Source: Oikopleura dioica
Taxonomy: Eukaryota; Animalia; Chordata
NCBI GenBank assembly: GCA_907165135.1
Contig: OU015566.1
Location: forward strand, 11,222,001 to 11,286,000
Direction of reading: 5' to 3'
DNA length: 64,000 nt
Below are positions 24,935-47,528 of the stretch, one piece after another. The translations under genes were made by a program, and so were the position numbers. Below the pieces are notes generated by a model. It was not told where the DNA came from, searched no databases, and saw nothing but the letters and a program-made list of their open reading frames with translations. Position 1 is the stretch's first letter. Each line of letters starts with the position of its first letter.

Positions 24935-26316
24935 TCACCACTGTTTTGTCGGTTGTTGGGGGCGAATGTTCACTCCTCCTGGTCGTTGCTGGTTCACTGG
25001 AGGTTCTTAAATTCGTGAAGAAGGAGTTTACAATGAGACCTTACGATTTCGAGCGCCCGATGTGACATTTGTGAGCCCAATTCCGTAGTAATATGTGCCG
25101 ATGAGGCTATTTGTGTCGTCATCATCGTTGTATCGTCGGTTTTCAAGGTTGTGGCGTTTGTTATCGAGAGATGCTTCTATCTTGTCGACTAGTTTGTTGA
25201 CCAAATCGTTTACTTGCTTAATTTTGTCGGCATCGATCGTTGAGTCTAAATGAAACTTGCATCTGACGCTGCTACAGTGTGCACTTACTGTCTTTGTTCA
25301 GTTCCTTTTGAAGCGCATCTACCGCGGGATCAGGCTTGGTTCGAAGGTAATCAGGGACTACTTCGTGGTTTACAGATGGAACGCGTTCTTCGGTCAATCT
25401 AGCGACCACTTCGTCTCGGTGCGGGTTGAGGATTACGGGGAAGCAGCTCGTATTACTAGATCAGCGGATATTCTAGCTGTATTTTTAAAGATGGAGCTTA
25501 CACAAGTCGCGGAGCACTTTCACTTCTAAGATATCGCGTTAGTGTTTCAATTTGGCCTTATAAAGTGTCAAAAGCGCTCGACAATCTGTTCAGTAGTGCA
25601 CTTTTCTGACCTTTCCTGTAATAAGCGCGTAGCTATCTAACAGACTCGCCCAATTTGGCTCTCGTCCTTGCGCCAACTCAGAATCAAGCTTTCCCAAAAG
25701 TCCTGAATTTGTTAAATACAAAATAGAATCTTATTTTTTACCTTCGAGGGCGATTTTCAAGTCTTTCGAGCGGCAGGGATCTAAATTTTTTCGCGAAAAT
25801 CGCAATTTGCGAATATTTTGCGATTGCGATACGAAATTTCGCAGAAAATTCGCAATCGCAAATTATTTTTTGATCGAATCGCAATCGCATCGCAATCGCA
25901 ACTCAGTTTTCGTCAATAATTCGCAAATTGCGATTTTTTTGCGAACTTTGGTCTTGTCAAAATGCTCCTTCGTTATTCTGACATGGGTTTTCTTTGACTC
26001 AGAGCCTATTTTCTGTGTTCTAAAGGCTTAATTGTAAGCCTGACCTCAAAAAATAGTCTTAAATCCTTTGAAAAATTACTTTTTACGCTAAAATTTCGCA
26101 AATGGCGACAAAATCGCAATTCGCGAAAAATTCGCAATTTGCGAAAAAAATCGCAATCGCATCGCAATTTCCGGACTATTTTGCGTCGCAATCGCATCGC
26201 AATAGCAATTTATTTTCGGCAAAAATTTAGATCCCTGTCGAGCGGTGATAAACGGTGGAAATTCCATTATCCAGTTGTTTCTCAATAAGGTTCGTAGACG
26301 CCTGATTAAAACTCAT
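24935..26316 (-). CDS. MED8: Mediator subunit 8; first coding exon interrupted by a MITE
   Basis: MSFNQASTNLIEKQL...KDLKIALE, WASLLDSYALITGQI, TEERVPSVNHEVVPDYLRTKPDP and DTNSLIG match MED8 motifs. Confidence 0.9.
25774..26237. mobile_element. 464-bp MITE (hAT/P-type ends) inside the MED8 coding exon
   Basis: Perfect 17-bp TIR CAGGGATCTAAATTTTT; 8-bp TSD TCGAGCGG at 25766-25773 and 26238-26245; subterminal TCGCAA/TTGCGA microrepeats. Confidence 0.95.
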
Positions 26317-26588
26317 TCTAAAACAGGAATTTTTTTAATATTGCTAGAAGTACAGCTTTGAAACATCTGTAATCAGCAGGTTGAAAGAGCATGACAAATC
26401 GGATTAGCCTTGAGCTCTAATCGGTATTAGCGCACTACGATCAGATTAAAAAAAGTCAAACTATATCCCGGTATCCGCGGGTCCTCTTCGAGCTCTGGCT
26501 CCGAGCCCCTCCGCGGGATTAGCAACATAAACCGACCCCAAATCTTTTGGCCTCTAATTTTTGCCGCTGTCTACGGATTGTTGACATT

Positions 26589-27937
26589 ATGGCACGTCAA
26601 AATAATATTCTTCTTTTTATATCGATTCTTGGTTTTATCTCAATATTCGACTTTTTTGAGAAATGGGCATTTGAAGAGAAAAATGAAGATTTACTCTCGT
26701 GTCCGGACTTTGGCGGGGATTTCATGTTCTCAAATGAGCCTAAATATTCATGAAGGGCTCGAAATGCGATTTTTATTCAGTCATTTTGGAAAATATTGAG
26801 CCTTAAAAAGTTAACGACAATAAATTCATGGGACATTGGCTCACTCACGGTCCGAATAATCAAATAAAAGACTTCAGAAGCGGAATATACGCTTCTATCG
26901 CAATGAAGCGAGCTGTTTTCCCGCCACTATTCTATTTCGGGATAGAAAAGAAACTTCTTTTATTAACCATCATCAATATTTATCCCGGCTCAGTTCTCAT
27001 TCAAACTCTGGGTCTCACAGTAAACTTGAAATATTTCATGTTTTGGACCTAGAAGAACTATCGAAACTGATAACAATTAGCGCCCCTTCGCAAATCGCGG
27101 AGAAATGTTTCGAACTTGGTGATTCCGGGGGAACAATACCAACTGGATTCAAGCAAAATATTCCAGCCGAACGAATTGATGATTTGATAGCCTATTACGG
27201 CTTCAATCGGAAGAACTCGAATTATTTTTCAAAAAGTCTTGAAATGGATGTTCGCAAGAAAGAACATCTAAATTTCAGCTCTATCGCAACAAGATTCAAC
27301 TATCCGGAATCGTGCATCCTTCAAGAACATCCCTGGAGAAACATCGATTACGACCAAAATTTGTGGAATGAGATAGTTCGAGCAACCCCAAGGCCGAAAT
27401 ATATCCGAAACGCGGCTGGCTGGATTAGGGATTTACTCTTTGGGGAAGATGAATATGCGGCGATGCACTGGCGATACAATAAAAACGTAAGATATCTACA
27501 ACTATCGAGTCAAATAAATGTTTTAGGACTGGGGAAAACACTGTGGCTCGGCTGGAGAATGGCGATCATGTCCAATCTACGAGCTTGGAACGAAAAATCC
27601 CGCTCTCTTTGCGCAGAAACTGACCAAACTCCTCAAAGAAAAGAATATCTATAAATTATACATCGCCGCTCCTCCAGATCAGTCCCGCCTTGTTGAAACA
27701 TTCAAGGACGAGATCTTGAAGATCGATGGAAAATTTGATGTTCTCGTTGGATTAGACGCGGTGAAGTTATTGCAAATACGGTACCCGAGATGCAAGTTCA
27801 TGAAAGAACACATGAACAATGTATTTTCGATAACAGAGCAAGAAGTGTGCTTTCAGTCTAAATTGTTTATTAGAGCAGGTTTGTTAGTATTGAAGAAGGG
27901 GATAACGGAATTCAGATCAATCAACTTGGTCGAGTAA
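26589..27937 (+). CDS. O-fucosyltransferase-family (POFUT-like, GT-B) type II membrane protein
   Basis: N-terminal TM, then GPNNQ, YAAMHWRY, LYIA and SITEQEVCFQSKLFI motifs. 3' end approximate. Confidence 0.7.
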
Positions 27938-30900
27938 TATTCGCGAAGAAAGAGATGCTGTCGCATCGAAGAAAAACTTATCTGAAACAATTCCTCTATC
28001 AGAAATTCTAGAGCTCGAATTGAGTTCAACTCGCTGGGCATGAAGGGATAAACTGTACAAGGTGAACAAATATTTAGACTTATTTATTATTAAACTCTGT
28101 AAGGAAACTGACAATAGTACAGTTGATTTTCGGCTTCTTCAGTAGGGCATGTCTGCAAGTTTGTATAAGCCAGCATGTTGACTGTATTTTTGAAATCGCT
28201 GACGACAGGTTTGAAGAGTTCCAATTTAGAGAATGTCAAGGACTGAAAAATTTTTATCAATTTTGAATATTTATGCGAGTTTCTTACGTTATTATTGGCA
28301 CCAAGTTGTAGCCTCTTTTCAGTGCACTTTTTCTTACAGCGACTTGCACCCTCTTTATCTTTTCTCGTTTCCTTCGGGCATGATTCCGTGAATGGCTTCT
28401 CGAGTCCAGAAGAGGAGAAAATCATGGCCTCATCATACTGATATTCTTCTAATATTTCTTTATATTCTCCTTCTTTTCGGTAATAAATCAACAGGTCATT
28501 TTCTTCGCCGAGTTTGAGCGGGAATCTATGCTGGTGGCAATGTAGCTTTATGACAACACTTTTACAATCTTCGATCATGATCTTTTTAGTGTTAGAAAAA
28601 AGATTCTAGTTGAATAAAGAGCCTTCAAGAGGGCTAACATGTTTTCAACACTTTCCTGGACAGTTTCTGGTCTCTCTTCCACTATTTGATCAAAATCAGT
28701 AAAGGAATCCATTCGGTACACCTTGTCGAATTCCTGATCTTCGTCGAAAAATTTCACCACGTACTGGAGAATGTTCTGGTACTTAGGGGATTTAGCACAT
28801 TCATGCACTGTGAATTGAGTCCTAAAAAGCCATAAGCCTTTGATTAAGATGATTCACTGTACCTAACACCAAGAGCTCTTGCTTTCAGGTCATTTAAGCT
28901 GTAATTAAAATGTGTGTGTCCCATCAGACCAAATCTATCTAACTCGGGCTTGAAGATTTCAGTTAGATTATCTTCTTTGTCCGGCTTGAGTTGATAGAAG
29001 ACAGAGGATTCGTCGAGGTGAAGATCTAGACTTGGGATCTGCTCACAAGTGCTCGTAACATTGGAGATTCCTGCAATCAGGGCTGGATATTTTGAAATCA
29101 GCAAAAATTTCAAATCAATTTTTGTGTGAAATCTCATTTCTATCTCAAAATTTTGCACCATCTCAACAAATCTCAAATTTCAATATTATCGCAACTCCCT
29201 CGTCATAATTTTTCCATTCTTGAGATTGCTGAGATCTCGAGATCTCAAATCTCAAAATTTTGCAAACCGCGCAAGGGCCGCGGACAAACGTCGCGGGCTT
29301 AGAGCAAGACTTGTGATTGGTTCAGATGGACCTGAAATGCTTGAGATCTCAGAATTTCAAATTTCATTTCATTGCAACGCGCGTATCCAACTCACGCAGT
29401 TTTCTGAAATGCTTGAGATCTCAGCATTTCAAATATCATTTTTTTGCAAAATCGAAAATTGAGATCTCAGACAGAAAATTTTCTGAGATTGCATTTTTGA
29501 AATGGATGAGATGATGATTCATGTTTTTTTCGGGGTTTGAAATTTTTGTTGATTTCAAAATATCCAGCCCTGCCTGCAATAGTGTTGAGCGGACTGTTTA
29601 GTGTTTCAGATTTGTAATGACTAACAAACATATACACAAGCTTAATTGAAACATTTCCTGAATGGAGTGACATCAAACGTAGTGCAGTCTGCACATTCAC
29701 CATTGATGATCTCGTTGATATCGCTTCTGAAGTTAAAGTTGTCGTTGGCGACAATTTTATGCTTGACAACATGTCCTTCTTGTCCATAAAACGTAAGCGC
29801 ATTGCCAGCAGTTTCGATCCAGAACTGACTAGAGTCCTCTGTGAGCGGTAAACTTTTGAAGAAGCTACCGATAAGATTCTGTCCTTTGTTGTCGTTGATG
29901 AATATTCGTCCATACGCCTTGTTGCTTCCCTTTTTGCCATGATTTATTCCTCCAAAAGTGATTCCCATTTTGATATCGCAGTGCTTTCCTCGGCAAGATT
30001 CTAGGTTCTTCAGTGATTTTGCTTCTCGTTCGCCATCGCTTTTGTTGAGCACTATTTCTCCATTAGAAATCGCGAGGGTTCCGGCGGTAAAAGTAAAGAT
30101 GTTGAAGTCTTTAGAAACATCGACATCGTACATTTCAGAAACAAATACGACAGCAGCGGAGTCCTCACTCTCACAGACATCGTCGTTTATGCATTTTTGA
30201 GTATCCGCAAGCGCCTTGTCGAATGAGTCGGTGAAAATGTTCAGTTGCTTTCCAAGAGCAGCAGAATCGATGGAGATTTTTCCTTCCGCGTTGTAGCGTG
30301 TACATTCTCGAGCATCACTATCTTTGTATTCTTCGGGGACGATGAAGTCGTTCTTGACGATGAAGTTGAATTTAGTATCAGCTGTTGGTTCGTACGAAGG
30401 ATGAAGAGCTTCGTTATGATTGATTTTAAGTCCAACAAAGCCAACCGCACGACCTGCCAAATTTGCAGGAGGATGCAAGTAAGAAAGACCCGGAGGAGAG
30501 ACTATTTTTCGCAGTTCATTTTCTTCGATGTAATCCTGACGCTCTTCGAGTTCCGGTAATTGATCGATCAGACACCAGAATATCTTTTTACAGTTCTCAA
30601 GCTCTAAGCAATCACTTTCTTTCTTGGCGTTGGTTCTGAGACGCTTCGGTCGCTCAGACATGATCATTTTTGGCTTTTGGTCGCTGAACAAAACTCTTGG
30701 ACTATTTTCGCCAAGTTCCAAGGATTTAAAATCTCTGGAGCATGATTGATCCTCAGCACCATCTTCATCTCTGCATTGAACCAGCTTGTTCGTGCTCATT
30801 TCAGAATCTTTTGCAATGTTGGTACTTCGGACAAGGAGTTCGAATCTGTTCAATCGCTGGAGTAGGCGAACATTGATGAATCGACCTCCATCTTGGTCGT

Positions 30901-33900
30901 CCTTGATCACAGCGTTCAAAGTTAAATGATCCCCTTCTTTTGTGAATATATCGACTTTAAGCATCCAAGCATCACTGTCCTGGGCGCATTCGTCATCGTT
31001 GTGGCCTTCAAGACTGACAAAGATTCCATCACCTTTTATTTTATTCTCACGCTTTCTACGTTTTCGTCGTTTCGTGGGATCTAAGAAATTTTCTTATTTA
31101 CAAAGATTAACGCGATTACCTTTTTTGAAGTCTTCTTCGTTTCCAAGGTAAAAAAGATTAGCATAATGAGGCTCAGTCTGCATTGAAAAGTGAATGTCCA
31201 ACCCAATGGACGAGTCTTTGAAGGACTCAGTCACAACATTTGGCAGTTCCATGATCTTGGAAACTCCGTTTTTGACTTCTTCTGGATGAACAATTTGAGC
31301 TGGAAGACCGCTTCTTGAAAGTGATTTCAAAATTTCTTCCGCATTCGAGCTGAAGCTCTTGATTTCACTCAGAAGCTCGTCGATTTCTTCGAGCTCATCT
31401 TTGATCTTGTCAGAGACTTTTTTCTGGGACTGGATTTGATCTTCGATCTCTTTGTCAAAGTTCGTCAGGCTGCACTCGTAGTCGTCTTTATTGTCGACGA
31501 AATCAGCGAGTGTGAGGTTTTGAGGGCAAAGATCAATTTCTCTACGACCTCTTTTCTTTCCGTGAAGATGTTGACTCAGCGTGCTGATTTCTTGCTCTGC
31601 ATAAGTATCGACAACATTTTCTGCTTCATTTTTGAGCTCGTCGAAGACGGATTCTTCTGGTGGAGTTTCGACATCGATGCTCATAATTGCTTCAATGATT
31701 TCTTCCTCTTTCGATTTTGGATTTTCGCCCCCATTCTCTGGCTCCAATTCTTCTTCGTTTTCTCTTTCAAGTTCAGCTTCAAGCTCCAAAAGAAAATCTT
31801 CATATTGCCGGTAAATTGTGTCGTTTTGCTCTTGGCATTCTTGAATCACATCCTGATCAGAAACACCTAATTCTCTAAGGTCATCCATCAGTTTTTTGTT
31901 CTCTGGCGGCTTGCACCACTCTCGCAGATTGTTTTGATAATCTTCCTTGAGTTCTTTTAGCTCATCATCCAGCAATGAATCCCTTTCGTTCAAAAGATTT
32001 GATTTATCGTGCACTTCTTCGAGTTCTTTACATAATTCCTCTTCTACGAAGCCCATAGAATCGCACCCAAGGGGCTCTACTCTTTCATCGAGTACTTCAT
32101 CTTCTTTGTCTCCGTAGTCGTCCTCATCATCATAGTCGGAATCGCCTGATGCTTCGAAGTCAACTTCAACTTCCGTCCAGTCTACCTGTCGTCGTCTACG
32201 ACCAAGGATTTCAGTAGAAATCTTCTCGTTGCATTTTTCAAGATCTGCATCACCTGTAAGATTCGCGCAAATTTCTTCAAAGACAGAAACATTCTTGTAA
32301 ATAAAATAAGCGTTTTCGATAAACTCTAGACTTCGGATTCCATCGTGAACTCTTCGCTGGAATTTTGTCTTGTAGTTTTTGTAAACCTCCGATCCAGCTA
32401 CATTCTTCCAGACGGGAGTTTTCCAGTTGCCATCAGTAAGCAGCGCGTCGAGGCGTTTTTCTTGAGCGAACTTTTTGATGTTCTCGCCATTCTCTGTCAG
32501 GATTTGGACACTCTTAGCGACGGCGTCTTCGTATTCTTGAAGCTTTTGGTCGAATTCTTCGAACATTTCAAAAACGCTCTTCATCGCATCGGAGTTTTCA
32601 CATTGTATGTCAGCAGGGTATTTTGTCTGACAATCATTGGTGCTGTTTGAGCAGAATTCGTGAATGATTGCGCGTGGCATCTTTTTATCAGAGCGTAGCC
32701 ATTGACCGGAAAAGTCGGTGATTTGCGTTTGAACTTCTGAATGATTGCAGTGAAGTTGCATGGCTCGCTCGTCAAGATTGTTGAAGTCATGCTCGAAATA
32801 CTGCTCCAAGAAACGATCAATCTTATCCATTTTGTAAATGTTCTTCTTCGTCATCTTCGACACATCTCCTTCGTAAGTATCAATGCCGTTCAGGATCTCA
32901 CGATCTTCCTCAAATGCTTTTAGAGCTACATCAAGCTCGTCAGCGTTGGAACAATTGAAATTCTCTGGAAGGATTTTGCTGTAGTCGGTTTTGAGGATAT
33001 CGGCAAATTCAGTTTCATTGTAGAAAAAATTGACCACGTCTTCAATTTCGTAAATTCGTTTCGACCTGCAGATGATGTCGTGGCCTTGGTCCATGATCAA
33101 GCCGTAGATGGACTCGAATCGGACGATCGACAGTTCATAGAGGTCCACTAGATCTTCGTAAGTTTGATTGCTCAAGAGTAAATCGTCCTTTCGAAGCACA
33201 TCCTCGAGCTGTCTCTTCAACTCTTTGAAATCAGCAATATCTTCCGATCTGGAATTGGTGTTGGAAGCGTGTATCTGGAGCTTTTCAATCTCCGGTTCAA
33301 AGTAAGTCCAAGTCTTGACCTTCTGGCACATGTTCTTATCGACGTCATCCACCATCTTTTCCAACTCGTGAAGCGTTTGGTTGAAGACTGGAACCATACC
33401 TTCTTCGTCCATCAAAAACTGACTCAAATATCTTGTCTTTTCTGCGACATGATGCTGGAGATCATCCCACATGTAAATAAGCTCAGTATGTTTGGTTTCA
33501 AGATCGGTGAGTCGTTGATCAAGGTCGTAATAATTCGGTCGGCTGCCGCGATAGCCGTAGTATTGTCGGTTTCCTCGCTTGAGATTTCTTGTGGATCGTT
33601 GAAGCACGATTTGTCCATTAGAATCTTTCTCCAAGTCTGAATTTCGAAGAGGACTGTCCTCGAACTCGCACTGCGGGAAGTTAACTCGTCCAGGAGCGCA
33701 TTCGTTACAATATCTTCCTCCGTATTTTGTCGATTTACAGTGGCATCTACCATGATCTCGGCTTGGGCAAACCGACCAAGCGGTCATTGGGTGACAGAGA
33801 CATTCCATGTTCTTGTTGACTGGCGTACATTTTGGAAAGTGTTCGAATCCGTCGGCGCACTTGTTGCACGTCCGCCCGGCGAAGCGTGGGAGACAGCGGC

Positions 33901-34188
33901 ATCGCCCCCGCCGTGTACATCCGCTGAATGACGTTTCTGCTTGACATTTGCATTTGACGCACTTTTTGTTTTGACGGAAGTAGCCGTTCAAGCACATTTG
34001 ACAGCTTGACCCTTTAAGAAAATTTATAAAAGATATTATACACCTACAGTACCTGTTGCTCCATCAGGACATTCAGCACACTTCATTAAGCCTAACTTAT
34101 CAATCTCTTTTTTAAAACCGAGATCGCTCGTTTTCTTTTTACATTTGGCCGCATTTGCCGCGGCCAGGAGCAAAAATATGCTCCGCAT
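27917..34188 (-). CDS. Laminin-alpha-like secreted protein (signal peptide, LE repeats, coiled coil, LG-like domains)
   Basis: ATG 34188 MRSIFLLLAAANA; LE repeats (CRCLPRFAGRTCNKCADGF, CHCKSTKYGGRYCNECAPG); long helical region; LG-like beta segments. ORFs 31094..33997, 29642..30964, 28844.., 28575.. and 28090.. join through in-phase introns. 3' end approximate. Confidence 0.75.
29078..29572. mobile_element. 495-bp MITE (hAT/P-type ends) inside a laminin-like coding exon
   Basis: TIR CAGGGCTGGATATTTTGAAATCA; 8-bp TSD CCTGCAAT at 29070-29077 and 29573-29580; internal GAGATCTC/AAATCTC repeats. Confidence 0.95.
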
Positions 34189-34878
34189 TTTCGATCACTC
34201 TCTTTCGGGCGAGGTTAGTCTGCCCTTAGGCCTCTGGAATTTCAAAAGAGTATACTCTGGCGCTATCTTTTTTGAGGTTAGAGCGGCAGAATTTTTCGTA
34301 AAATGTTAATTTTTAACCGGATCGTGTTCGTTTTGGCGGCTCTACCACTTGGCAAATACTTCTCCTGACCAAATTATACACGAAAAGCACACATAAGGAC
34401 AATGCAATCAAAGGACGCATTCCAAATTTAATGACTGATTTTGACATTGTGCTCAAGGATTTGTGCAAAGAACTGAGCCACAGAGAGAAGGAGCATGGGA
34501 TAATCAAATATTGATTTCCGGTGCCCAAAACGCAACATCGGTACATTCAAGGATGTTTCAATTTTCATAGGAAGAAAAATACAGTTACTTTAACAAAAAT
34601 AAAATGCTTTTCATATCAATCCAGAAGCTAATGGTATTAAATTGGTTATTAACAGATGTAAAAGATAGTAATAGTTTAAAAAAAAAAGATCAAAATAAAA
34701 AAGAATAGGGTCTTCTTTTACTAAAACTCTTTATCAACAAATATCTAAAACGATGATCAAGTGCAGAGGGCTAAAAAAAGTCATTCGCCCGTTGTAAAAA
34801 ATATCATTGATTGGGCGCAGTTTCAGTCGATAAAATCAGGCCAAGATACTGTTGACAAATATTCAGTGCGCCACCAGC

Positions 34879-34950
34879 GGTCCTATGGTGTAATGGCTAT
34901 CACTGTGGACTTTGAATCCACCAATCCGAGTTCGAATCTCGGTAGGACCT
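34879..34950 (+). tRNA. tRNA-Gln (TTG)
   Basis: 72-nt cloverleaf: GGTCCTA/TAGGACC acceptor stem, GTGGA-CTTTGAA-TCCAC anticodon arm, CCGAG-TTCGAAT-CTCGG T arm. Confidence 0.95.
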
Positions 34951-35190
34951 CACTTTTAGAAAATTATACTGATAAGAAAAAGGGGATGAAATTAGATTTT
35001 TCTCTCTTTTAATGCAAGAATATTCGATATGGACATAAAAAATAAAATCTCAATTTTTCGTATTTTTCTCTAAATTGCTGAGTCAGAGGAAATGTGAAAA
35101 AAGGATGATAAGGTTGCAAATCAAATTACTGCGAGGAAGAAGGATAGAAAGAGAGGAAGCCTAAAAAAGGAGAGAAATTCCCGGAGGCCA

Positions 35191-35212
35191 GGATTGGCTG
35201 GCGCGGGCGCAC
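35191..35212 (+). promoter_or_regulatory. CCAAT box (ATTGG) next to an E2F-like TGGCGCGG site upstream of the UCHL5 gene run
   Basis: GC-rich island GGATTGGCTGGCGCGGGCGCAC about 250 nt before the UCHL5 ATG, in AT-rich surroundings. Confidence 0.4.
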
Positions 35213-35451
35213 GGTTCATTTTTTTCTCTTGAACTTTTTGGGCTTCTTTCTTGAAGAGAAAATTTCACGAATCGCCGACTGAAAGAAGCTCGAATCGAGC
35301 TGCTCGATTTGATAAGCATTTTTTGGAAACCATAAAAATTCACAAATTTAATTTTTGTACATATAATTCTAGAACAACACTTCATCCCTGTTTTCTTACA
35401 TAATCTTGGCGGCGTGATAACGATTTTTATCAATTTCAGAATTTGAAAAAA

Positions 35452-37314: not shown

Positions 37315-37544
37315 AAGAAAATCGCGCCATCTAAAATTTCTTCAACCTCTTTTTTTCAACCAACAAAACATGTATCGCCCCACATTTTAAGTATTATTTC
37401 GAAAAGTTCAACTCATCTTCTCTATCACTTCTTTTTGGAGAAATCTTGATCTGCCAGTTTTGACGAAAAACAAGAAAAAATGTTACAAAGTTACTCAAAG
37501 TTTTGGAAATATTCTTCTTCAAAAGAAGGAGAGAGTGAAAGAAA

Positions 37545-39067
37545 ATGTTGTCGGTAGAGCAGTTGAGCAAGCAAATCGCGGACATTTGCCCAGAAGATCA
37601 TCTGAAATCGTTTCTGCAGCGTGATGTAAGGCCAGATGGTCGAAGTCTTGACGAGCTTCGCCCTCTTGTGTTGGCTAAAAATGTCGCTCCGACTGCGGAC
37701 AGCTCCGCGATGATCAGACTTGGCAATACAAAGGTCATCTGTGGAATTACAGCAGAAACGATCAAGCCTGCAGCGGCTACACCAACTGATGGATCGTTTA
37801 GTGTGAATTTTGAATTTTCACCAGGTAGGCTTGAAAATTTCGACCCCTTTTCAAAACCGTATTTCAAGTTTGTTCGCCTAATGCGAAAGCAGGACCGCCG
37901 AATGAAGTAGCACAGACGATGTCGATCTTTTTGGACGGAATTTTGAAACAAGTTTTCGACAACAACCAGTTGTGCATTGAGCCGGATGTGTTAGCTTGGA
38001 CGCTTTTTATTGATGTGTACTGCCTTGAAGGTAGTTTCGTTGATTTTTTCTGTAAGCCTTTGATGAGTTACCATAAGAATTTTTCGGCCAAAAAAAATTT
38101 TTTTGAGATAGTGGCATATTCTTAAAGCCCATAAAAAACTAGCCAGAATCACAAAATTCTAGGGCAAGGTGACGTCATTATGACGTCATCCAGCTCATTT
38201 GAAAATTTTATCTTTGGAACGCTTTTTAGAGCCAAAAACGTTTTTGAATTCTTATTTTCTCAGCGGATTCGGATTCCTCATGAAAAACTACGTGGGGACC
38301 CGGGCTCAAACCATCATTACCAACCGGTTCTAGTGTCAGGTAATTTTCGAAACCGGTCGGTTAGAAAAATAAACCTCGGGTCCCCACGTAATTTTTTCTG
38401 CCTAACAACATGCTATAAGCAGAAAATTATATTTCTGACGATAACCGCCTCAAAAAGCGTTCCAAAGTTTCATGAATTTGGACCCTTTTCGGACATTTAT
38501 TAATCATAAATGACGTCATAATGACGTCATTGAGCCCTAGAAAATTGGGGATCGACGTATTTTGACATGGGCTTTCAGAACATGCCATTATCTCAAAAAA
38601 TTGTTTTCGGCCGAAAAATTCTTATGGTAATTCATCCTTTATTAATTTTTAAGACGATGGAAACGTAACGGACGCTGCCATGATGTCCGTTATATCCTCC
38701 CTCCGAGATCTGAAGCTACCAGAAATCACGATAGACGAAGAAACGGCGAAGCCAGTCGTAAATGTAGAGAAAAGCACTCCAGTCTCATTGAAAATGATTC
38801 CCGTTTCGACTACGTATGGAGAATTCAGTGGAATATTACTCCTCGATCCTACTGCTCGAGAAACGGAACTCGGAAGCTCGCCAATTACAGTCGTTTGCTC
38901 GGAAAAGGGCGCTCTGTTGTGCTTCAACAGATCTGGTGGTTCTCCACTTTCGCAAGAACAGGTCGCGGCGGCCATTGAGAATTCAAAAAGGTTTTAGCCT
39001 TCGTGATGACTGGAATTAATAGTGTTTTAGGAGGTCTTCGACGATCTATGATCAGTACTTTGCTTGA
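37545..39067 (+). CDS. EXOSC8: Exosome complex component RRP43
   Basis: RPDGRSLDELR, SAMIRLGNTKVICGI, AWTLFIDVYCLE|DDGNVTDA and LLLDPTARE (RNase PH fold). Confidence 0.9.
38062..38636. mobile_element. 575-bp palindromic MITE in an EXOSC8 intron
   Basis: Long imperfect inverted arms (GATGAGTTACCATAAGAATTTTTCGGCC...); CTTT on both sides; removing it restores a 44-nt intron (38031-38653). Confidence 0.85.
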
Positions 39068-39245
39068 AATTGCGTCGCGTCAGATTCATTAAATCAGATT
39101 TTGGCCCCCACGATTTGGTCGGGTCCAAGAATGTTTGATCATCCCTCACAGATGATCTTTATCATCTCAAAAAGGATACAGTCTGTTACAAAACCAGCTG
39201 AAATTATGATTTTCAGAATGATTACATCCTAACCGAAAATCGAAG

Positions 39246-41397
39246 ATGTCGAAAACGTTTTCTGCCTTGCTCGCACTCTCCAAGCAACTGGAGGAGAAGA
39301 GCGCCGGGCTAGCTCTTGAATGTCTTCACGCTGCTACTCTTCTTGAGAACACATCTGCCGAGGAAAAGGCATGCTCGAATTATTTGCTCGGCGAGCTGTT
39401 GCTCAAAACCGCTCAAGAGCCACTGGACTCGAAGCAGTTTTTCTTGGCTTCTATTGAGGCTTCTCAGGAAGGGTTCACCTCAAGGTCTTTCTTCTTAGCG
39501 TTTTTCGAATTTAAACCCTCAAAAAGACAATAATAAAAACAGACCTCTCCAGCCGCCAGTATCTTCTCCGCTCGCTCGAGAAATTATCCGGACTTTTACC
39601 TATTTCCGAATCGACCATCATTTTATCCGATATCCTTTCAAAACACAACGAGGACGACACATTCCTGGCGAAGCTATTTTTCAGCTTTCTCGAAATATTC
39701 GCGAATTGCGGAGCTGACAGATTGCTCCAAGTGATGACACTGTTCAAATGCGAGCCGATTGCAACTTTGCGGAGGAAATCAGAGTACATCGACATTTTGA
39801 TTAATTTATCCAACGCCTTGGTAATCATCCACAAACAAGTTAAAACGAACCGTTTTTAGCTTATTTTGAAAAACTACTGCCGTGCTCATGAAAATTTATT
39901 CCACGATATTCTCGACGAAGCTGAGAATAAACTCCACTCAACAACGATTGATCAAGCGAGAAAAGCTTCTTTGAAAATTTATCTTCACTGTCTAAGAGTA
40001 AGAATCATCCTTCCTCTCCTTATTTGAGCTAAAAAATCAGATTATGAACGTCCTGACATGGGGAATTCCCGAACGCGGGGATAGAAAAACTGGCAAGAGT
40101 TTGAAGCAGTTTCACCAGGAAATCATCGCATACAGTCAGCTACAAGAAGAACCAACAACTGAATCAGATCTTAACTCGTAAGTTTCAGCCATCTTCCCAG
40201 AGATAAACTAACTCCGTTAGATTTTTCTGGCTAAAGAAAGAAGAACTAACTGCCCTTGGTTATCTCATCACTGTAATTCATTCCGTCAGATTTGGAAATA
40301 TCGACAAAGCGATCAAATACAGTGAAAGAACGCTCAATCAAGTTTCCACTAATCAGAGGTAGCAATTTTTTAAGACTCTATTAATCATTTCAAGTTTCTT
40401 CAATGACAACCTGCGGATCCTGACCCTCGAGTACCTTGCACAGTGTAAATTGATAATTGGCGAGCCCCTTGAATGCGTAAAAATCATTTCTGAACTCTCG
40501 AATCTTGCTCAAAGCGGGTCGCATCCATCGAAAATTAGCCAGGTTTGTTCCTTTTGAATACTCCATCTCAAAGAGGATTTTAGATGCATTCTTTGATCGC
40601 TTTCCTTGCAATGAGTTCGAATCAGAAAGAAACTGCGCTCAAGCATTTCCAACTGGCCTTGGAAGCTAAACCTGAGAACGAATCCTTCGTCAAACTATGC
40701 ATCAGCTTCGCGAAGGGCGCTCCGCTCGATCCTAGTTTTCGAATGAAGAAAGTGTTCCTTTGAATGCGATCACTCACTTGATTTCTGGATATGCGCAGTT
40801 CAGTCAAAAAGACCACGATTCTGCAAAGTATGGAGAAATCATTGACACATGTTTTCAATACTTGTTTTTAGGAGAACATTTCGAGATGGAGTGAAAGTAT
40901 CCAACGCACAGGACATCAAGAGTTTGACGGCAATGTACCTCCTTCTTCTTGGAGAAATTTTCATATCGACTTCAAGTGATGTAAGTTTTTGGGTTTTTGT
41001 ACGATGATCGATGTAGACAGACGAGATTGAAGTTACCGCCCATCAGGGTTGGGCCGAGGCCCATCATCAGTGAATTTGGGTCGACTGTAGATCCGGTGCC
41101 CAAAACGTAACAGGAGCGTCGGAGCAATAGCCACCGTGATGTTTTTGTGATAACGTTTAGTGGGTCAAAATAATTTTGTGTAGACATATTCAACGTGAAT
41201 CTTATGGTGTCCTTCAGAGTTAGTTCAATGCCCACCCGCATTATTCCAGTAATTACGAACGAGGTTCCATTTTCAGTAATTTTGCGAAGACGCTGCCACG
41301 GTTTTATAAATAGGCAGATGAGAATTTCTATGAGATCAGTGGGATAGATTCCTCTTTCACGATGCGTTCAGAGGTTCATTTGATGTGCTTTGGGTAG
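39246..41397 (+). CDS. MAU2: Cohesin loader subunit MAU2/SCC4
   Basis: N-terminus ALLALSKQL...LALECLHAA...NYLLGELLLK resembles MAU2, followed by TPR-like helical exons. 3' exons approximate. Confidence 0.75.
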
Positions 41398-41504
41398 TCG
41401 TCCTATCTCCACTGCCGACAGATCATGAAAAATACCACATGATCCTTAGGGTTTGCTAATTATGGTTTCAGGGCTACATGACAACTGTAAAACAGGCGCG
41501 GCAA

Positions 41505-44500
41505 ATGGCTGCGAAAATTCAACATGAATCGTTATTAGTCTGGGCAAATCGGTTGAGCTTGTCGTCTGGGAATTCAGCCGACCCGGATTTTCAGGTTTTT
41601 CACACCATAATCCTAAATTTTCATCTAAATCATATTTAGAAAATCCAAGAGGAATTAGCCAAGCTTGAATCAAAAAGAGCATCAGATGAAGCTGCAATTA
41701 GAGAATCAGCACTCGCGAAAACTCTTTTCAACGTAAGATTTTCCCGATGATTTATCTATTATCTATCGTTCAGTGGACTTCTATCACGGAACTTCCGAAA
41801 ATCCAAGTTGATGCACAAGTCAAGGAGGAAGCGAAACCAGAAATATCTCAACAAATTTCTAACGGCTCAAGTTCTGATTTGCAGCCTCAAAATGTTAAGC
41901 AAAACCATGCTCTTGTCGACCAAGAAATCGACAACATGATTTCAAAGATGGAAGGAGGGACCTCAATGATGGGCCCTCCCAGCGAGCGGCCTCCTCCGTC
42001 TCCGGCAGCGCAGTCGCCTCGTCCAGTTGCTTCTCCTCGCCCGCCTCCAGTAGTTTCCCCGAATGTTTACCAGAATCAGCCCGTCAACTCTCCCGTTCAA
42101 TACAACACGCAGACACCCTCGCCGATGAGCCAACCCACCACGCCTCACTCGCCGTTCCAGCCAGTTCACTCTCCACTGAATCCAACATCACCGCATCAAT
42201 CCCAGCAAGCTCAAATGGGTGCAATGATGCAACAGGGCCAGTTCAATAACCAAAACCACTCGCCGAGTATCTCACCACATCACCCTTCCCCGTCTATTTC
42301 TCCCAAAATTCCTATCAACCAACAGAATATGATGGGCCAGCAGAAATTGATGCCTCAAAATGTTGCTCCAACTCAAAGTCTCAATACAGGATTCTCCGTA
42401 AGATAGATCTTTCAACGTGTTTTTTTTAAGGGTATAGTAATCGCTCAGGCCTACTTTGAGCTCGTACTCTTCAGCACCTGTAAGTAGTAAAAATTGCCTA
42501 AATGGCTAGAAATAAAGATCTATCTAAGATCTTACTATTGACAAGAGCTTTTTTTGAAATTCCATCATTTTTACCACGTGACAACCCCTTAAAGTTGGCA
42601 TCTCGGCCAAAATAGGCTATATAAACGGCCGAACTCCTCGGAAGTTTTCAATAAGGTCCAGAATCTTTTTTAGTGGATTATGTAGATCAGACCCTTATCT
42701 TAAAACTGACAAGAGCTTTTTTCGATTACTTAATTTTTTCTTACAAAATTTTTTCGAAAATCGATAGTATCCATTTTTGACCTAAACAACCACCTTAATT
42801 GCCCTGAGGGCACTGCCCAAACTCCACCGTTTTTATATCAGATTGAAGCCCTGAACATAAGCTTTCTAAAAATGTGTCATATGAAGCCCCTCGGAAGCTT
42901 CTAAAAATGGTCAAAAATTTGCTTATGGGCAAAATGCATTAAATTTCGCCAATTTCAGTCACAATTTCCAGGAAACCGGTTGAAATAGAGATACAGCTCA
43001 TAAGGACCTTTTCGTTCAGAATTTCATGAGGATTCTAAAAATCGACTCAGACAAAAAATTTGAGACTTGGCAAAGAGCGATGACTATACCCTTAAGTTTA
43101 TTTTCAGGGAATTAGTCCAAACCAAAACAACTTCGGGAACGGCCATTTCCAGCCCCAGCCAAACCCGATCCAGCAGCAAGTTCCGATGACACAGCATAAC
43201 TACAATCCATTTTCCCACACAAATATAATCGGCAATCAACAAGCGCCGATGGCCAATGCTCAGCCGCTTGCTCCTCAACAAATGAATACAGGCAACGGTC
43301 ATCTGCCGGGGCATGGTTTCCAAATGCAGCCGCAAGGAGCCCCGATGCAGCCTGGTTTTTATCCTAATATGTTCCCTAAGAATCAACCCAACGCACAAAC
43401 TAACCATCCCTTCCCCAACCATTTCCAGTAAAGTTTTATTCCCTGATTTTCCTTCTTTCCATACTTCTGTTTTTGAATACTGATCTACTGCCGATCTCAA
43501 ATAATCCTGATGTTATCAATTTTAGAATGCTACTACCTGTCAAAGATTATGTTGCAATACCGATAAGATATCGACAGGAAGCAGAGACAAGAGGAATTCC
43601 GGACAGAGACACAATACTAGAAGCAAAGGGATATACAGAATGCCGCATCTGCAAAGACTGTGACGAATCGGCGCCTAACGTTAGAATAGACGAGTACAAC
43701 CTGCATATATTCAAACATCACCAAGTTCTTGCTAATTTATTATACTATTCGAAGTATACCCACTGGATCAACACGCCTCAGCTCAAGATTCACTGGCAGA
43801 AGGAAAACAATCAAACTTTGAAGAAGCTGAAAAGATGGTACACTCAAGTGCGAAGACCCGAATGTGGCCGAGCCCTCGACGAGATGATGCTGGAGTACGA
43901 AAAGGTCCTCAAAGAGCCGTTCATCAAGGAGAAAGAAAATCAGTACGTAGCGAGAAATGCCTTCACGAGAATGCTGATACGGGAAGAGTTTCAAATAAAG
44001 GAGGAGATTGGAGATCCTCCCGCTGTTGCCCCTGGACCACTTTCTGATAGAAACGCCAGAAGAGCGAAACTGATAGAATATTACAAGAACAAAGCGAAGA
44101 AAGCAAATGAACCAATCATTATTGATAGTAAAGAGAGCACAGATCCTGTCATCATTGTCGATGAAAAACCAGCAAAGCCGAAGAAGAGACCGAAGAAAGT
44201 TTCAGCTCCTACGGAGCCAGTTGTAATCCTTGATGACAGCGATGAAGAGCAACCTCCGTCGACAGAAATGGACACGATGGATGATGATATTCCGATTACA
44301 AAGCTGCTTGAGAAAGGAGCAAAGATGGTCAACAAGATTGAAGAGAAACTCTCAGAAGAGACCCCGAAATCAAACGGCCCGAAGATTGTTCTAAAAGATG
44401 TCAATGACAACAAAGACTTCTTTGCAGTTCAAAATAGACCACCTCTTAATTGTCCGAGCGAGTCTTCTGACTCATCATCGGAATCAGAAGTAGAAGTGGC

Positions 44501-45424
44501 TCCAGTTGTCCCGAAGGTACAGGAAGTCAAATATTTGAATTATAACAACTCCTTAGTTTGTATCAGCATATCCAGATAAGGCCTCACAAAGTGAAGCGCC
44601 GAAAAGAAAGCGTTTGTTCGAAGAGCCATCTCCAGTTGTTAGTAATGGTGTCTTTGATGTCAATAAACCTGGAACATCAAAACTTACTCTTCCTGTGCAC
44701 GTAAATTCCGGAAGCAATAATCCAGTGAAGAAACCAGCAAAAGCCTCAAAATTGTCTCAACGATTTGCTTCGCTAAAAGAGGATTCTAATAAGAAATTCG
44801 CTGATAGAGGGCTAGACATGTCGAAGTCAAGGCTAAACGAGCTGAACCCAGAGAAGAAAATTCCATCGTTGAAGGTTTATTCAGAAACAAATCCAAGCTC
44901 AAAAGACAATTCCACAGAAAATTCTTCATACAAGCCAATGTCAATAAGTGCCGTCAAAAATCAAAAGATGAAGGAGAAACAAGGCAAAATAAGGGCAAAG
45001 AGAGAAGACGGCTTGATTAAGGTTTACTCCGAGCCGCTTGGAAAGGACCCACGTTCCATGAAAAAAGTAATGCAGCATCTGAATAATGGACACAACCTTT
45101 GGTTTCTCTGCCCTCTGTCAAACAAGAAGATAGTCACTCCAGTAAGGGGCGCAAAGTGCAAACATGGGTCGACATTCTGTTACCAACAATTCAAAAGAAA
45201 AGAACTGAACAGACCAACATGTCCACTCTGCAGTATGAAATTCGAGTAAGCTTCTTTTTCTCCTTAGCTTCTTATAAGCTTATTTTAGTAAGAATAATCC
45301 GCTGAAAATCTGTTCATTCACAATGTCGCTGATGAAGGACTATCCAAACTTTCTCCAAGTTCGCCAGATCAATGATGGAGGGTTGAAAACAAAAATCGTT
45401 GGGGCTAAACTAGCGGACTCTTAA
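41505..45424 (+). CDS. SP-RING (MIZ) zinc-finger protein, PIAS/ZMIZ-like, with a Q/P-rich region
   Basis: LCPLSNKKIVTPVRGAKCKH...CPLC SP-RING at 45100-45235; C2H2-like CRIC...HIFKHH; P/Q/S-rich exons. Both ends are manual predictions. Confidence 0.7.
42430..43091. mobile_element. 662-bp MITE with TTAA TSD and GG...CC termini (Kolobok-like) in an intron
   Basis: TTAA|GGGTATAGTAATCGCTC ... GAGCGATGACTATACCC|TTAA; removal restores a 44-nt intron (42398-43107). Confidence 0.9.
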
Positions 45425-45568
45425 TATTGCTTCTATCAATCTTTTGTATATACTCGCAATTTTTTTCAAATAAAATGCAAAAACTGGAAAACTTATATTT
45501 GTCATTTTATTTACGATATGACAAATCGTTGTGTCTCGATCGTAAAGGGCATCTTTTCAGAGAAATAG

Positions 45569-47528
45569 ATGTGGAATCAAGCCAGGCTTTCTATCGCATT
45601 AGACTGAGATAATGAAACATTGTTGAAAAAGCATTCGTTAGTGAAAATTATTGATGGAGGCATGGGCACGGAACTTGTGCGTTGTGGCGTTGAAGATGTT
45701 GACAAGCACAAGCTGTGGTCGGCATTGGCCAATGTTGAGTTCCCTGATTCTGTAGTGCAAGGCAAGATTCACCAAATTATGAAAACATCTATCTTTTTCT
45801 AATTTTTAACCACTATAATTAGCCCACAAGAATTTTATCAACGCTGGAGCCGATATCATCATCACAAATACTTATCAATCGAACCAGCCACTGCTCATGA
45901 GTGAGCTGAAGATATCAAGAGAGGAAGCAGACAACCTGCTTCTAAAAACTCTTGATCTTGCTCGTGAAGCAGCAGGGCCGGGCACAATCGTTGCGGGATC
46001 AATTGGACCCTATCCGGACTGCCCAGCTTCCGAATACAACCCGGAGTATTTGAAAAGGATTAGTTTCGAGGAGCTTTACGAGTGGCATCGCCCGAGATTC
46101 GAGATCTTGGCAAAGGAGAGTTTTATATTGCAGAATTCAGATCTTCTTGACCCTGAATAAAACCTTACAGAGTTCAAAAGTCGACATTCTCGCGTGTGAA
46201 ACAATGCCTGGAATAAAAGCAGGGTGGCTATTTTGGACAAAATTTTGGGGTCTAGCCATCCAATTTCCATCCAATAAATTTTGAGTCGGAACTATCCATC
46301 CAAAATCCAACCCAATCCAATTATTACCCAATTCCCCAAGAATCCCCAATTCCAATAAGATCCAATTGGATTTCCAATTTTTCCAAGGCTTTTAGTACTT
46401 TGAAAAGAAGCGAAACAGTTAGTTTCTATCCGAAAGGAGGATCAACATAGCCAAAAGAATGATTTTTTATCCGAAATTTTTCATTTTTATCATGAAAATG
46501 ACCCTTCTTTGCATAGTTAAGCGATACAGTGAAAACTCAAAATTTGCCCACTCGAAATTTGGCCGGTTTTGGTCGAAATTGACTGATTTAAGAATCTGAA
46601 AAAGACTCAAAAATTGGCCGCTTTTTCAATAATAGAAAATTTTGGATCAAAATTGCGCCTAAATTATGCTATTCCTGGGCATTTTTAGCTTTTTTAGACT
46701 GTTAAAATTATTTAAAATGACTAATTTCTAAAATAAATGTCTTCAAACAAGCAAAAATTTGAATTAAATTGTTCAAAAACGTGAAAATCATGCCCATTTT
46801 CGAAAATTTGGAAAATTTGCTTCTTAGAAGTGGACTCTTGGCTATCCGGTAAAAAACTCAAAATTTGGCCGCTTTTTTCTTGAATAAGGATCTAAAAACC
46901 GGCCAATTTTTGAGTTTTAACTGTATATATTTTATTGGATCCAATTCCCCAATTTCCCCCAATTGCCCAATTTTTCCCAACAAAATCCGGTACCCTGGCC
47001 ATCCAAATTCCATCCAAACCTTATTGGATTGGATCAATCCAATTCCAACTAACCCCCAAATCCAAAATAGCCACCCTGATAAAAGAAGCTCAAGTTTTTC
47101 TCAAACTCCTGTCTGAAGTCAAAAAAGAAGCTTACATATCGTTTACTTGTCAGAAGGGCACAACAAATGCTGGAGAATCCTTTTCTGATATTGTGAATAT
47201 GCTCAAATCTGAGAAGCCGGACAATTTGAGAGGAATTGGAATCAATTGCTCTGAGCCTGATGTTGTCGACGAATTCGGTACTGTCATGAAGGCAAACTTT
47301 CCAGAACTGACCTTGATTTGCTATCCAAATACGGGAGAGACCTGGACGAACAACGCTGGTGAATGGGAAGTTGAATCAAGCCAGTGGGGTGGAACTAGAG
47401 CTGACCTTGCCTCTTACGTACCAAAGTGGCTTGAAGTCGGATTCAAATGGATCGGTGGCTGCTGCAGAGTTGAACCTAAGGACATTTCAAAAATTGCAAA
47501 CATTGTCAAGAACAACACTGAACAATAA
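45569..47528 (+). CDS. Homocysteine S-methyltransferase family protein, possibly a disrupted allele
   Basis: IIDGGMGTEL, LWSA, GADIIITNTYQ, VAGSIGPY, DILACET, GIGINCS, CYPNTG and WIGGCCR (Zn-binding Cys). In-frame TGA at 45605 and a MITE in an exon. Confidence 0.9.
46220..47078. mobile_element. MITE (460 bp plus a nested element) inside the HMT coding exon
   Basis: 18-bp TIR CAGGGTGGCTATTTTGGA; 7-bp TSD ATAAAAG at 46213-46219 and 47079-47085; CCAAT/TCCAA microrepeats. Confidence 0.9.
46527..46923. mobile_element. Nested Tc1/mariner-type MITE (TA TSD)
   Basis: TA|CAGTGAAAACTCAAAATTTG ... CAATTTTTGAGTTTTAACTG|TA. Confidence 0.8.

Follow-up and report, generated by a model that had tools for sequence, protein, structure and literature searches.

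Results

Three CAGGG-ended MITEs in the window

The window, a 64-kb stretch of contig OU015566.1, comes from the O. dioica assembly OKI2018_I69 and represents the Okinawa lineage. It contains three MITEs, here E1, E2 and E3, which were found at the genes for MED8, a laminin-EGF protein and a homocysteine S-methyltransferase (HMT), respectively (Table 1). The original prediction had described them as three CAGGG-ended, internally unrelated elements of 464, 495 and 460 bp net; their sizes and ends check out, as do all structural statements made on them. Each begins with CAGGG and ends with CCCTG, and no internal similarity was detected among the three. E1 is flanked by the 8-bp TSD TCGAGCGG at 25766-73 and 26238-45 and carries a TIR of about 20 nt (CAGGGATCTAAATTTTT). 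E2 has an 8-bp TSD, with CCTGCAAT on both its left and right flanks (ATTGCAGG on the gene strand), and TIRs of 37–43 nt that match at 93–97%. The TIR of E3 is 18 nt long and perfect, and its TSD, ATAAAAG, measures only 7 bp, one base short of eight unless one was lost.

An 8-bp TSD, perfect in E1 and E2 and 7 bp in E3, and a short TIR starting YARNG, here CAGGG in all three, identify the elements as hAT-type. These hallmarks, taken with the perfect TSDs, argue for recent insertion. Neither an autonomous hAT element nor a further copy of any of the three families was found within the 64-kb window; genome-wide, read depth suggests some 10–20 copies for these families. A scan with the pattern [CT]AGGG...CCCT[GA] and a TSD identity of at least 7/8 returned E1 and E2 only, and 20 shuffles returned 0. 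The other MITE types sit in introns or nested inside a MITE, as had been claimed: two are intronic, one of them in a region that the published 278-aa model also treats as intron, and a third lies inside E3.

Could the long-read assembly have misplaced these MITEs into exons? Nothing specific speaks in favour of such an artefact. Exact TSDs surround each element, and in a second individual short-read contigs end precisely at the E2 boundaries, in a bubble with an empty path; we consider an artefact highly improbable.

Table 1. Features of the window discussed in the text.
Feature	Position	Strand	Remarks
MED8 exon 1	25742..26316	-	Start ATG 26316; donor GT 25741; interrupted by E1
E1	25774-26237; with TSDs 25766..26245	-	hAT-type MITE, 464 bp
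GT-AG intron, laminin-EGF gene	28821..28861	-	41 nt; metatranscriptome contig
E2	29078-29572; with TSDs 29070..29580	-	hAT-type MITE, 495 bp
Unrelated comparison MITE	38062-38636	.	Within GT-AG intron 38031-38653 of RNase_PH (exosome) gene
Comparison MITE, TTAA-flanked (piggyBac-like)	42430-43091	.	Within GT-AG intron 42398-43107
HMT intron 1	45762..45822	+	61-nt GC-AG; used by published model
HMT intron 2	46116..46172	+	55 nt, non-canonical: GG-AG 46116-46170 or GA-AG 46118-46172
E3	46220-47078; with TSDs 46213..47085	+	hAT-type MITE, 859 bp (460 bp net of nested MITE)
Tc1/mariner-like MITE nested in E3	46527-46923	.	TA TSD, CAGTG...CACTG-type TIR
HMT last exon	47086..47528	+	Separate published 109-aa model begins at ATG 47199

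Insertion sites in the host genes

E1 certainly lies within a coding exon of MED8, where it is inserted after codon 26 and 32 nt from the natural donor. Read through the element, MED8 terminates after ...HRSTGI*; with E1 taken out, the empty-site reading continues as ...STVYHRS|KDLKIALEG. The gene is otherwise intact, with a Med8 Pfam match on exon 3 (25275-25409).

E3 is likewise within a coding exon, and this too is certain. It splits the HMT domain between PGIK and EAQVF, close to position 150 in a profile of 283. The empty-site reading ETMPGIK|EAQVF fits the MPG[IL]KEA[QR]V of proteins and one contig from other lineages, whose HMT orthologues (three proteins and one contig) are uninterrupted, and HMT is otherwise an intact host gene. 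The prediction that the host makes relaxed use of non-GT donors is borne out at this locus: both HMT introns are non-GT (GC-AG, and GG- or GA-AG), so that G-N donors are routine here. Intron 1 is backed by the arithmetic of the published model (499-nt range, 145-aa product). For intron 2 there is no frame-keeping GT-AG placement, and the orthologous intron in the other-lineage contig is GG-AG.

In the published annotation HMT appears as two truncated models and E3 is not spliced out. These RNA-seq-guided models halt at E3, which is weak evidence against splicing, since the same models also miss intron 2. No Okinawa HMT product across E3 was found in the protein library, and the HMT junction with a gap of 0–30 nt had no match in the JGI metagenomes.

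Do all three CAGGG MITEs reside in coding exons, as originally proposed? For E1 and E3 they do. E2 would be exonic if the 20 nt read as SPLNTIA(G) belong to the coding sequence; it may equally sit within a GG-AG intron, the TSD having copied the acceptor of that intron. Its TSD copies an acceptor-like site, ATTGCAG|G, that is consequently present on either side of the element, and an exonic and an intronic location are therefore both possible. The label 'laminin-like' derives solely from one EGF_laminin match, in the 967-aa exon upstream of E2; no Pfam match was found in the exons flanking the element. The 41-nt GT-AG intron is the only splice junction of the region seen in RNA, and it sets the coding frame downstream of E2. 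In protein-library searches, partly length-limited, no annotated product was found to include the 440-aa exon beside E2: one search gave no homologue of this exon, the representative protein library yielded nothing beyond a fragment of 109 aa that comes from another lineage, and a search with the 967-aa exon returned the Bergen partial model only. The scaffold at the Bergen locus is palindromic, and for this reason the E2 region is missing there. In metagenome contigs the E2 TIR gave 57 single matches, all of them chance and none extendable.

The supposed preference of CAGGG MITEs for coding sequence is rejected: with a coding proxy of about 54% of the window and n = 3, three out of three is unremarkable where roughly half of the window is coding.

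Frame, splice geometry and RNA folding

Does the reading frame betray splicing? The retained lengths given in the original prediction (+18 in MED8, +18 in HMT, 0 or +12 in the laminin-like gene) are arithmetically correct, but their being in frame carries no signal: roughly one in three G...AG pairs keeps the frame, as chance alone would give. The shared sum of 18 is no better as a coincidence: a fixed geometry, with position +3 as donor and the opposite TIR's first AG as acceptor, fits two of the three elements (p = 7/27, ~0.26). For E2, exact removal is possible on paper via ATTGCAG|G (GC-AG, net 0). No pair giving exact G-N...AG excision was found for E1 or E3; options for E1 include +18, +9, −9 or the next natural acceptor (−21), and those for E3 include retained lengths of +3, 0 and +18 nt. 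Translated, the +18 scar in MED8 would read ...HRS-TDPCRS-KDL, and in HMT the scars would read PGIK-A-EAQ (+3) or PGIK-AATLIK-EAQ (+18). Several junctions are thus candidates, and the data give the CAG|GG...TAG| pair no privilege over the others.

Two further geometries were discarded. The AG/AY geometry of Fritillaria borealis, with an AG start in C|AGGG, gives no exact removal, because the base after the second TSD copy differs from the first base of the element. In a '2+6' register (last 2 nt of the first TSD copy, element, first 6 nt of the second) the ends are GA...TC for E1, GG...CA for E2 and AG...AA for E3, none of them G-N...AG.

In MFE folds the termini of E1, E2 and E3 pair from the first and last nucleotide, and the proposed donor and acceptor positions lie in perfect terminal RNA stems of 18–23 bp. 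Stems of this kind are what SOS splicing acts on. In that alternative, paired TIRs trigger the spliceosome-independent AKAP17A-CAAP1-RTCB route, which cuts the mRNA at several positions within or close to the repeats and rejoins it; the outcome is a mixture of small indels, only some of them in frame. In C. elegans, SOS splicing has been described for exonic copies of Tc1, Tc3 and Tc4, and in human cells for HSMAR2; excision reaches 90–100%, and the trigger is ITR pairing alone, so that non-autonomous elements are included (PMC12779559). E1 and E3 are exonic DNA transposons with pairable terminal repeats for which an exact spliceosomal solution is lacking, and hybrid SOS-spliceosome events are reported in contexts such as that of E1, close to a natural donor (PMC12779559). 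However, SOS splicing is not known from tunicates, the perfect TIR stems fall short of the 54-nt Tc1 ITR, and the non-canonical introns known from O. dioica, nearly all of the G-N...AG type, point to the spliceosome where elements persist. We regard SOS splicing as an unlikely account of the three elements.

Empty alleles and RNA reads

The comparison with empty sites, proposed with the original prediction, found E1 and E2 empty in another individual (X26), alongside the uninterrupted HMT of other lineages. For E1 the empty site is exact, joining 25767 to 26240 with 472 skipped; for E2, 29069 is joined to 29573 with 503 skipped, and the empty junction is covered at nearly full depth (56, vs 59–67 in the flanks). 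E1 and E2 are insertion polymorphisms. In X26, ten SNPs at 25656-25737 set the two haplotypes apart. Two RNA read sets labelled O. dioica place 4 and 3 reads on the window, 90–95% alike; these sparse matches are probably reads from another cryptic lineage. One metatranscriptome of the same lineage as the window covers neither element junction. Across these RNA sets no read or contig showed an element spliced out.

Are the elements simply insertion mutations? They would then be removed inefficiently or not at all, and would mark recent loss-of-function or hypomorphic alleles, of low frequency or heterozygous, that were caught in the assembly of a single individual. The empty alleles and the uninterrupted orthologues agree with this, as do the perfect TSDs, which indicate very young insertions, the HMT annotation broken at E3, an in-frame geometry no better than chance, and a genome about half coding, in which half of new insertions land in CDS regardless. 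Taken together, the empty alleles and the published models broken at E3 lean against efficient splicing. On the other hand, two or three exon insertions within a stretch of 64 kb, including one in MED8, a Mediator subunit that is essential, would mean a heavy null load, and two known routes might clear such elements from RNA in the host. Plain insertion mutation is plausible too, though less likely than not.

Discussion

How, then, might carriers tolerate E1, E2 and E3? Our preferred reading, to which we assign a probability of roughly 0.37, is that three young, polymorphic hAT MITEs are tolerated because they are removed from pre-mRNA as newborn introns. The element would be cut out by the U2 spliceosome of O. 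dioica, which would accept its G-N donor, while the paired TIRs would draw both exon ends together. E2 would be removed exactly, as a GC-AG intron or within a resident intron; with E1 and E3, small scars that keep the frame would stay behind, as is expected of elements that have no exact G-N...AG solution. Removal at the RNA level is plausible, whether through a spliceosome that tolerates G-N donors or through SOS splicing set off by the hairpin. In favour of the preferred reading we count the signs of recent insertion, the intact hosts, the G-N introns of HMT, the E2 TSD that recreates ATTGCAG|G and the terminal stems, as well as the larvacean precedent and the non-canonical introns of O. dioica taken up below; against it, the absence of spliced RNA in the sets covered, the chance in-frame rate, splice sites buried in 18–23 bp of dsRNA and the lack of exact excision for E1 and E3, together with the empty alleles, the models halted at E3 and the lack of an annotated product with the 440-aa exon.

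The nearest precedent comes from another larvacean. In Fritillaria borealis, non-canonical introns derived from MITEs are well established (Henriet et al. 2019, via PMC11282704 and PMC13326754). As in the present case, the elements concerned are TIR-bearing miniature DNA transposons, and ends other than GT are tolerated by the U2 spliceosome. The F. borealis introns occupy species-specific positions, have AG/AC and AG/AT ends in most cases, carry YAY triplets, and have been shown to be spliced. In O. dioica, by contrast, the non-canonical introns of the host belong to the G-N...AG class, the MITEs are of hAT type and have an 8-bp TSD, no exact AG/AY excision exists and splicing is predicted.

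Introners are DNA transposons that make introns on insertion, with one splice site provided by the element and the other by the TSD (Huff 2016; Gozashti 2022, PMC9860276). On paper the geometry of E2 is of this type: its TSD places AG|G at either end, and a GC donor is completed by the element's first base. Unlike introners, E1 and E3 have no exact removal; introner families moreover comprise hundreds to thousands of precisely spliced intronic copies, compared with ~10–20 copies here by read depth. Maize Ac/Ds, with the TIR CAGGGATGAAA, belongs to hAT and is removed from RNA by way of sites at its ends, with small scars left behind. It shares with the present elements the superfamily, the CAGGG terminus and exonic insertion, and its splicing from exon RNA was reportedly found by Wessler and colleagues in 1987 (cited in PMC12779559). 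That is a plant system in which removal was demonstrated experimentally, whereas removal of E1, E2 and E3 is a possibility read from the sequence. SOS splicing (Zhao et al. 2025, PMC12779559) resembles our case in acting on exonic DNA transposons with pairing terminal repeats, and it predicts imprecise junctions, only partly in frame; it differs in being spliceosome-independent and is not known from tunicates.

Within O. dioica itself, non-canonical introns make up 11% in this assembly (PMC8008620). These introns are enriched among new introns of the species (PMC4122922, citing Denoeud 2010), and G[ACG]-AG introns, the same donor class in the same species as considered here, are described with rapid gain (Denoeud 2010 via PMC4122922, PMC3443670; PMC8008620). 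Transposon insertion is already among the inferred sources of Oikopleura intron gain (PMC4122922, PMC3443670; PMC8008620). In this published work no link was found from such introns to particular hAT MITE families that are active, or to exonic insertions that are polymorphic.

Do E1, E2 and E3 reveal intron birth in progress? In the broadest version of our reading, several active hAT MITE families would now be creating introns in a chordate, with the three elements newborn and still segregating, G-N donors supplied by CAG|G at the transposon end or in its target duplication, and both the G[ACG]-AG class and the record intron turnover of O. dioica fed by this process; we judge this rather unlikely. 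Intron turnover in O. dioica is among the fastest known. Some 11% of its introns have GA, GC or GG as their first two bases, and the three elements may bear on the origin of both features. If they are not removed, they are young deleterious insertions, and a published annotation is broken by one. In an animal that can be cultured, and in which one individual can carry both a filled and an empty allele, exonic MITEs that are polymorphic would make the question directly testable.

Two of the three CAGGG-ended MITEs lie in conserved exons

Where do the three CAGGG-ended MITEs, E1, E2 and E3, sit within their hosts, the genes for MED8, a laminin-EGF protein and homocysteine S-methyltransferase (HMT), respectively? 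The element sizes and coordinates of the original prediction proved correct upon inverted-repeat scanning and direct reading. In BLAST searches within the window, none of the elements had a second copy, and the three resembled one another only at their ends. Elements with a YARNG terminus and an 8-bp TSD bear the hallmark of hAT transposons. A pattern scan of the window for [CT]AGGG...CCCT[GA] with matching 8-mers found only E1 and E2, and nothing in 20 shuffles. The interior of E1 (25796-26180) is made up of many copies of a TCGCAAT/ATTGCGA motif in both orientations, while GAGATCTCA motifs recur in E2 and CCAAT(T) motifs in E3; judged by sequence, these may be subterminal transposase-binding repeats.

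Features of the three elements and of the resident HMT introns. L001 is an HMT contig of another Oikopleura lineage.
Feature	Position in window	Ends or splice sites	Flanks or context	Counterpart in L001	Method
E1	25774-26237, 464 bp	CAGGG...CCCTG	perfect 8-bp duplication TCGAGCGG on both sides		inverted-repeat scan, direct reading
E2	29078-29572, 495 bp	CAGGG...CCCTG	flanking duplication CCTGCAAT		inverted-repeat scan, direct reading
E3	46220-47078, 859 bp (460 bp net)	CAGGG...CCCTG	7-bp flanking ATAAAAG		inverted-repeat scan, reading
Tc1/mariner-like MITE	46527-46923		TA-flanked, nested in E3		
HMT intron 1	45762-45822	GC-AG		~2070-2158	
HMT intron 2	46116-46172	GG- or GA-AG		~2451-2509, GG-AG	

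Read on the minus strand, the empty E1 site encodes MSFNQASTNLIEKQLDNGISTVYHRS|KDLKIALEG, followed by a GT donor. With E1 present the reading frame ends after HRSTGI, and the Med8 Pfam domain lies on the exons after the split one. The empty E3 site reads ILACETMPGIK|EAQVFLKLL, the Pfam S-methyl_trans domain extends over both sides of the element, and MPG[IL]KEA[QR]V is unbroken in proteins and one contig of other Oikopleura lineages. By reading frame and domain content, we assign E1 to an exon of MED8 and E3 to an exon of HMT. The prediction that all three elements interrupt open reading frames thus stands for these two, but E2 is uncertain. It may be exonic, if an upstream GA-AG intron precedes 20 coding nucleotides (SPLNTIA-G), or intronic and placed on the acceptor, if a GG-AG intron ends at ATTGCAG|G. 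An RNA-confirmed 41-nt GT-AG intron (28821-28861) sets the frame downstream of E2 (GISNVTSTCEQ...); protein-library searches and the Bergen locus L063 yielded no orthologue covering the E2 spot.

The other MITE types do lie in introns, as had been proposed: the 38-kb MITE and the TTAA MITE both fall within GT-AG introns, and the published RNase_PH model treats the former as part of an intron. The TTAA MITE sits in an intron of a published 1452-aa product (39246-45424) that combines Cohesin_load with a faint MIZ/SP-RING zinc finger; this model may be a fusion of two adjacent genes.

Empty alleles and a broken gene model

Comparison with empty-site alleles, suggested along with the original prediction, was possible in DNA contigs of another individual (X26), which carries exact empty sites at E1 and E2. 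At E1 the joint runs from 25767 to 26240 (472 nt skipped) at a depth of 29 of ~57, on a haplotype with ten SNPs close by. At E2 it runs from 29069 to 29573 (503 nt skipped) at a depth of 56, versus 59-67 in the flanks. E1 and E2 are thus polymorphic insertions, and the E2-carrying allele is rare or absent in this sample. Could E1-E3 be young harmful alleles, unspliced or poorly spliced? We consider this somewhat unlikely; the empty alleles agree with it, as does the broken annotation of HMT. The published OKI2018_I69 models (45662-47528) divide HMT into two truncated products. The first (145 aa, 45662-46160) uses the 61-nt intron 1 and runs on into intron 2, and the second (109 aa, ORF 47199-47525) begins at the first ATG past E3. 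E3 is not spliced out in this annotation; because the non-canonical intron 2 is missed as well, that carries little weight, hardly beyond thin RNA support.

In-frame splicing occurs at the chance rate

In-frame splicing at all three elements had been put forward as a signal. We paired every G-start located between -15 and +40 relative to the 5' junction, as donor, with every AG located between -40 and +15 relative to the 3' junction, as acceptor. Pairs that keep the frame and contain no stop made up 3/20 for E1, 6/18 for E2 and 21/64 for E3, about one third and equal to the chance expectation, with which the harmful-allele reading also agrees. The same CAG|GG donor of E3 gives +18, +3, 0 or -6 nt by choice of acceptor, and alternatives at E1 give +9, -9, and, via the natural acceptor of intron 1, -21. 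The fixed rule originally applied, which puts the donor behind CAG and takes the first AG of the opposite TIR as acceptor, leaves two of three elements in frame, where chance gives p = 7/27 for at least two. Statistically, the in-frame argument carries no weight, and a demonstration of this is one thing the window adds. Nor is the presence of all three elements in coding sequence an enrichment, since ORFs of 100 aa or more cover ~54% of the window (7% after shuffling). On paper, exact G-N...AG removal is possible for E2 only; E1 and E3 contain no such pair, and match neither the '2+6' register (an intron of the last 2 nt of TSD1, the element and the first 6 nt of TSD2) nor the F. borealis AG/AY type.

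Possible routes of removal from RNA

The idea is known in kind, from introners, F. borealis MITE introns, Ds splicing and SOS splicing. What the window contributes is a pair of clear-cut exonic insertions in conserved genes, with empty alleles documented, and a TSD that copies an acceptor (E2). The host context favours removal of the elements at the RNA level. We count here HMT's own introns, both non-GT and identical in position in the other lineage. Intron 2 is bordered by a 5-nt direct repeat, AGAGT. Non-canonical introns make up 11% in this assembly (PMC8008620). They are threefold enriched among new introns, and Oikopleura is one of the species for which intron gains from transposons have been inferred (PMC4122922, PMC3443670); in the sister larvacean F. 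borealis, MITE-derived non-canonical introns are excised by the U2 spliceosome (PMC11282704, PMC13326754). E1-E3 might be newborn introns taken out by the spliceosome, our tentative main reading, with a probability of roughly 0.37.

In predicted folds of each element with 20-nt flanks, the termini pair right from the first and last nucleotide (stems of ~19 bp in E1, 23+13 bp in E2 and 18+7 bp in E3). Such stems are predicted to draw the exon ends together, and in these models the originally proposed donor and acceptor sit buried in double-stranded RNA. Another route, described for C. elegans and human mRNAs, is SOS splicing, which cuts out exonic DNA transposons without the spliceosome; its trigger is terminal-repeat pairing only, its junctions are heterogeneous and rarely GU-AG, and the frame is restored only partly (PMC12779559). 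E1 and E3 resemble textbook substrates. We judge SOS-type excision of E1-E3 from mRNA to be unlikely.

RNA and cross-lineage data

Cryptic-species divergence within 'O. dioica' is known. X5 and X6, two oligo-dT raw-read runs filed as this species, yielded only 4 and 3 reads matching positions 25100-30900 of the window, all 90-95% alike, in agreement with such divergence; they probably stem from another cryptic lineage. The species label is therefore insufficient for choosing RNA for this assembly. One marine metatranscriptome with this lineage (X1) covers a downstream exon pair and MITE copies of other loci, but none of the junctions across the elements. Its contigs include an E1-family copy (25774-25963), which continues into unrelated flank and so comes from another locus, and an E2-family copy (29209-29397); MITE copies thus occur either in the poly(A)-selected RNA itself or in DNA carried over with it. 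Junction pattern and TIR searches of metagenome contigs returned no genuine match.

The nearest named homologue of the laminin-EGF gene's upstream exon is a Bergen 'unnamed protein product [Oikopleura dioica]' (66% identity). Locus L063 (FN653082.1, 95219-117133) carries two copies of the first ~500 laminin-EGF codons, inverted relative to each other, and the UCHL5 and RNase_PH genes are likewise mirrored on either side; this is probably a palindromic haplotype misassembly. The gene order UCHL5 - RNase_PH - Cohesin_load is common to this locus and the Okinawa window.
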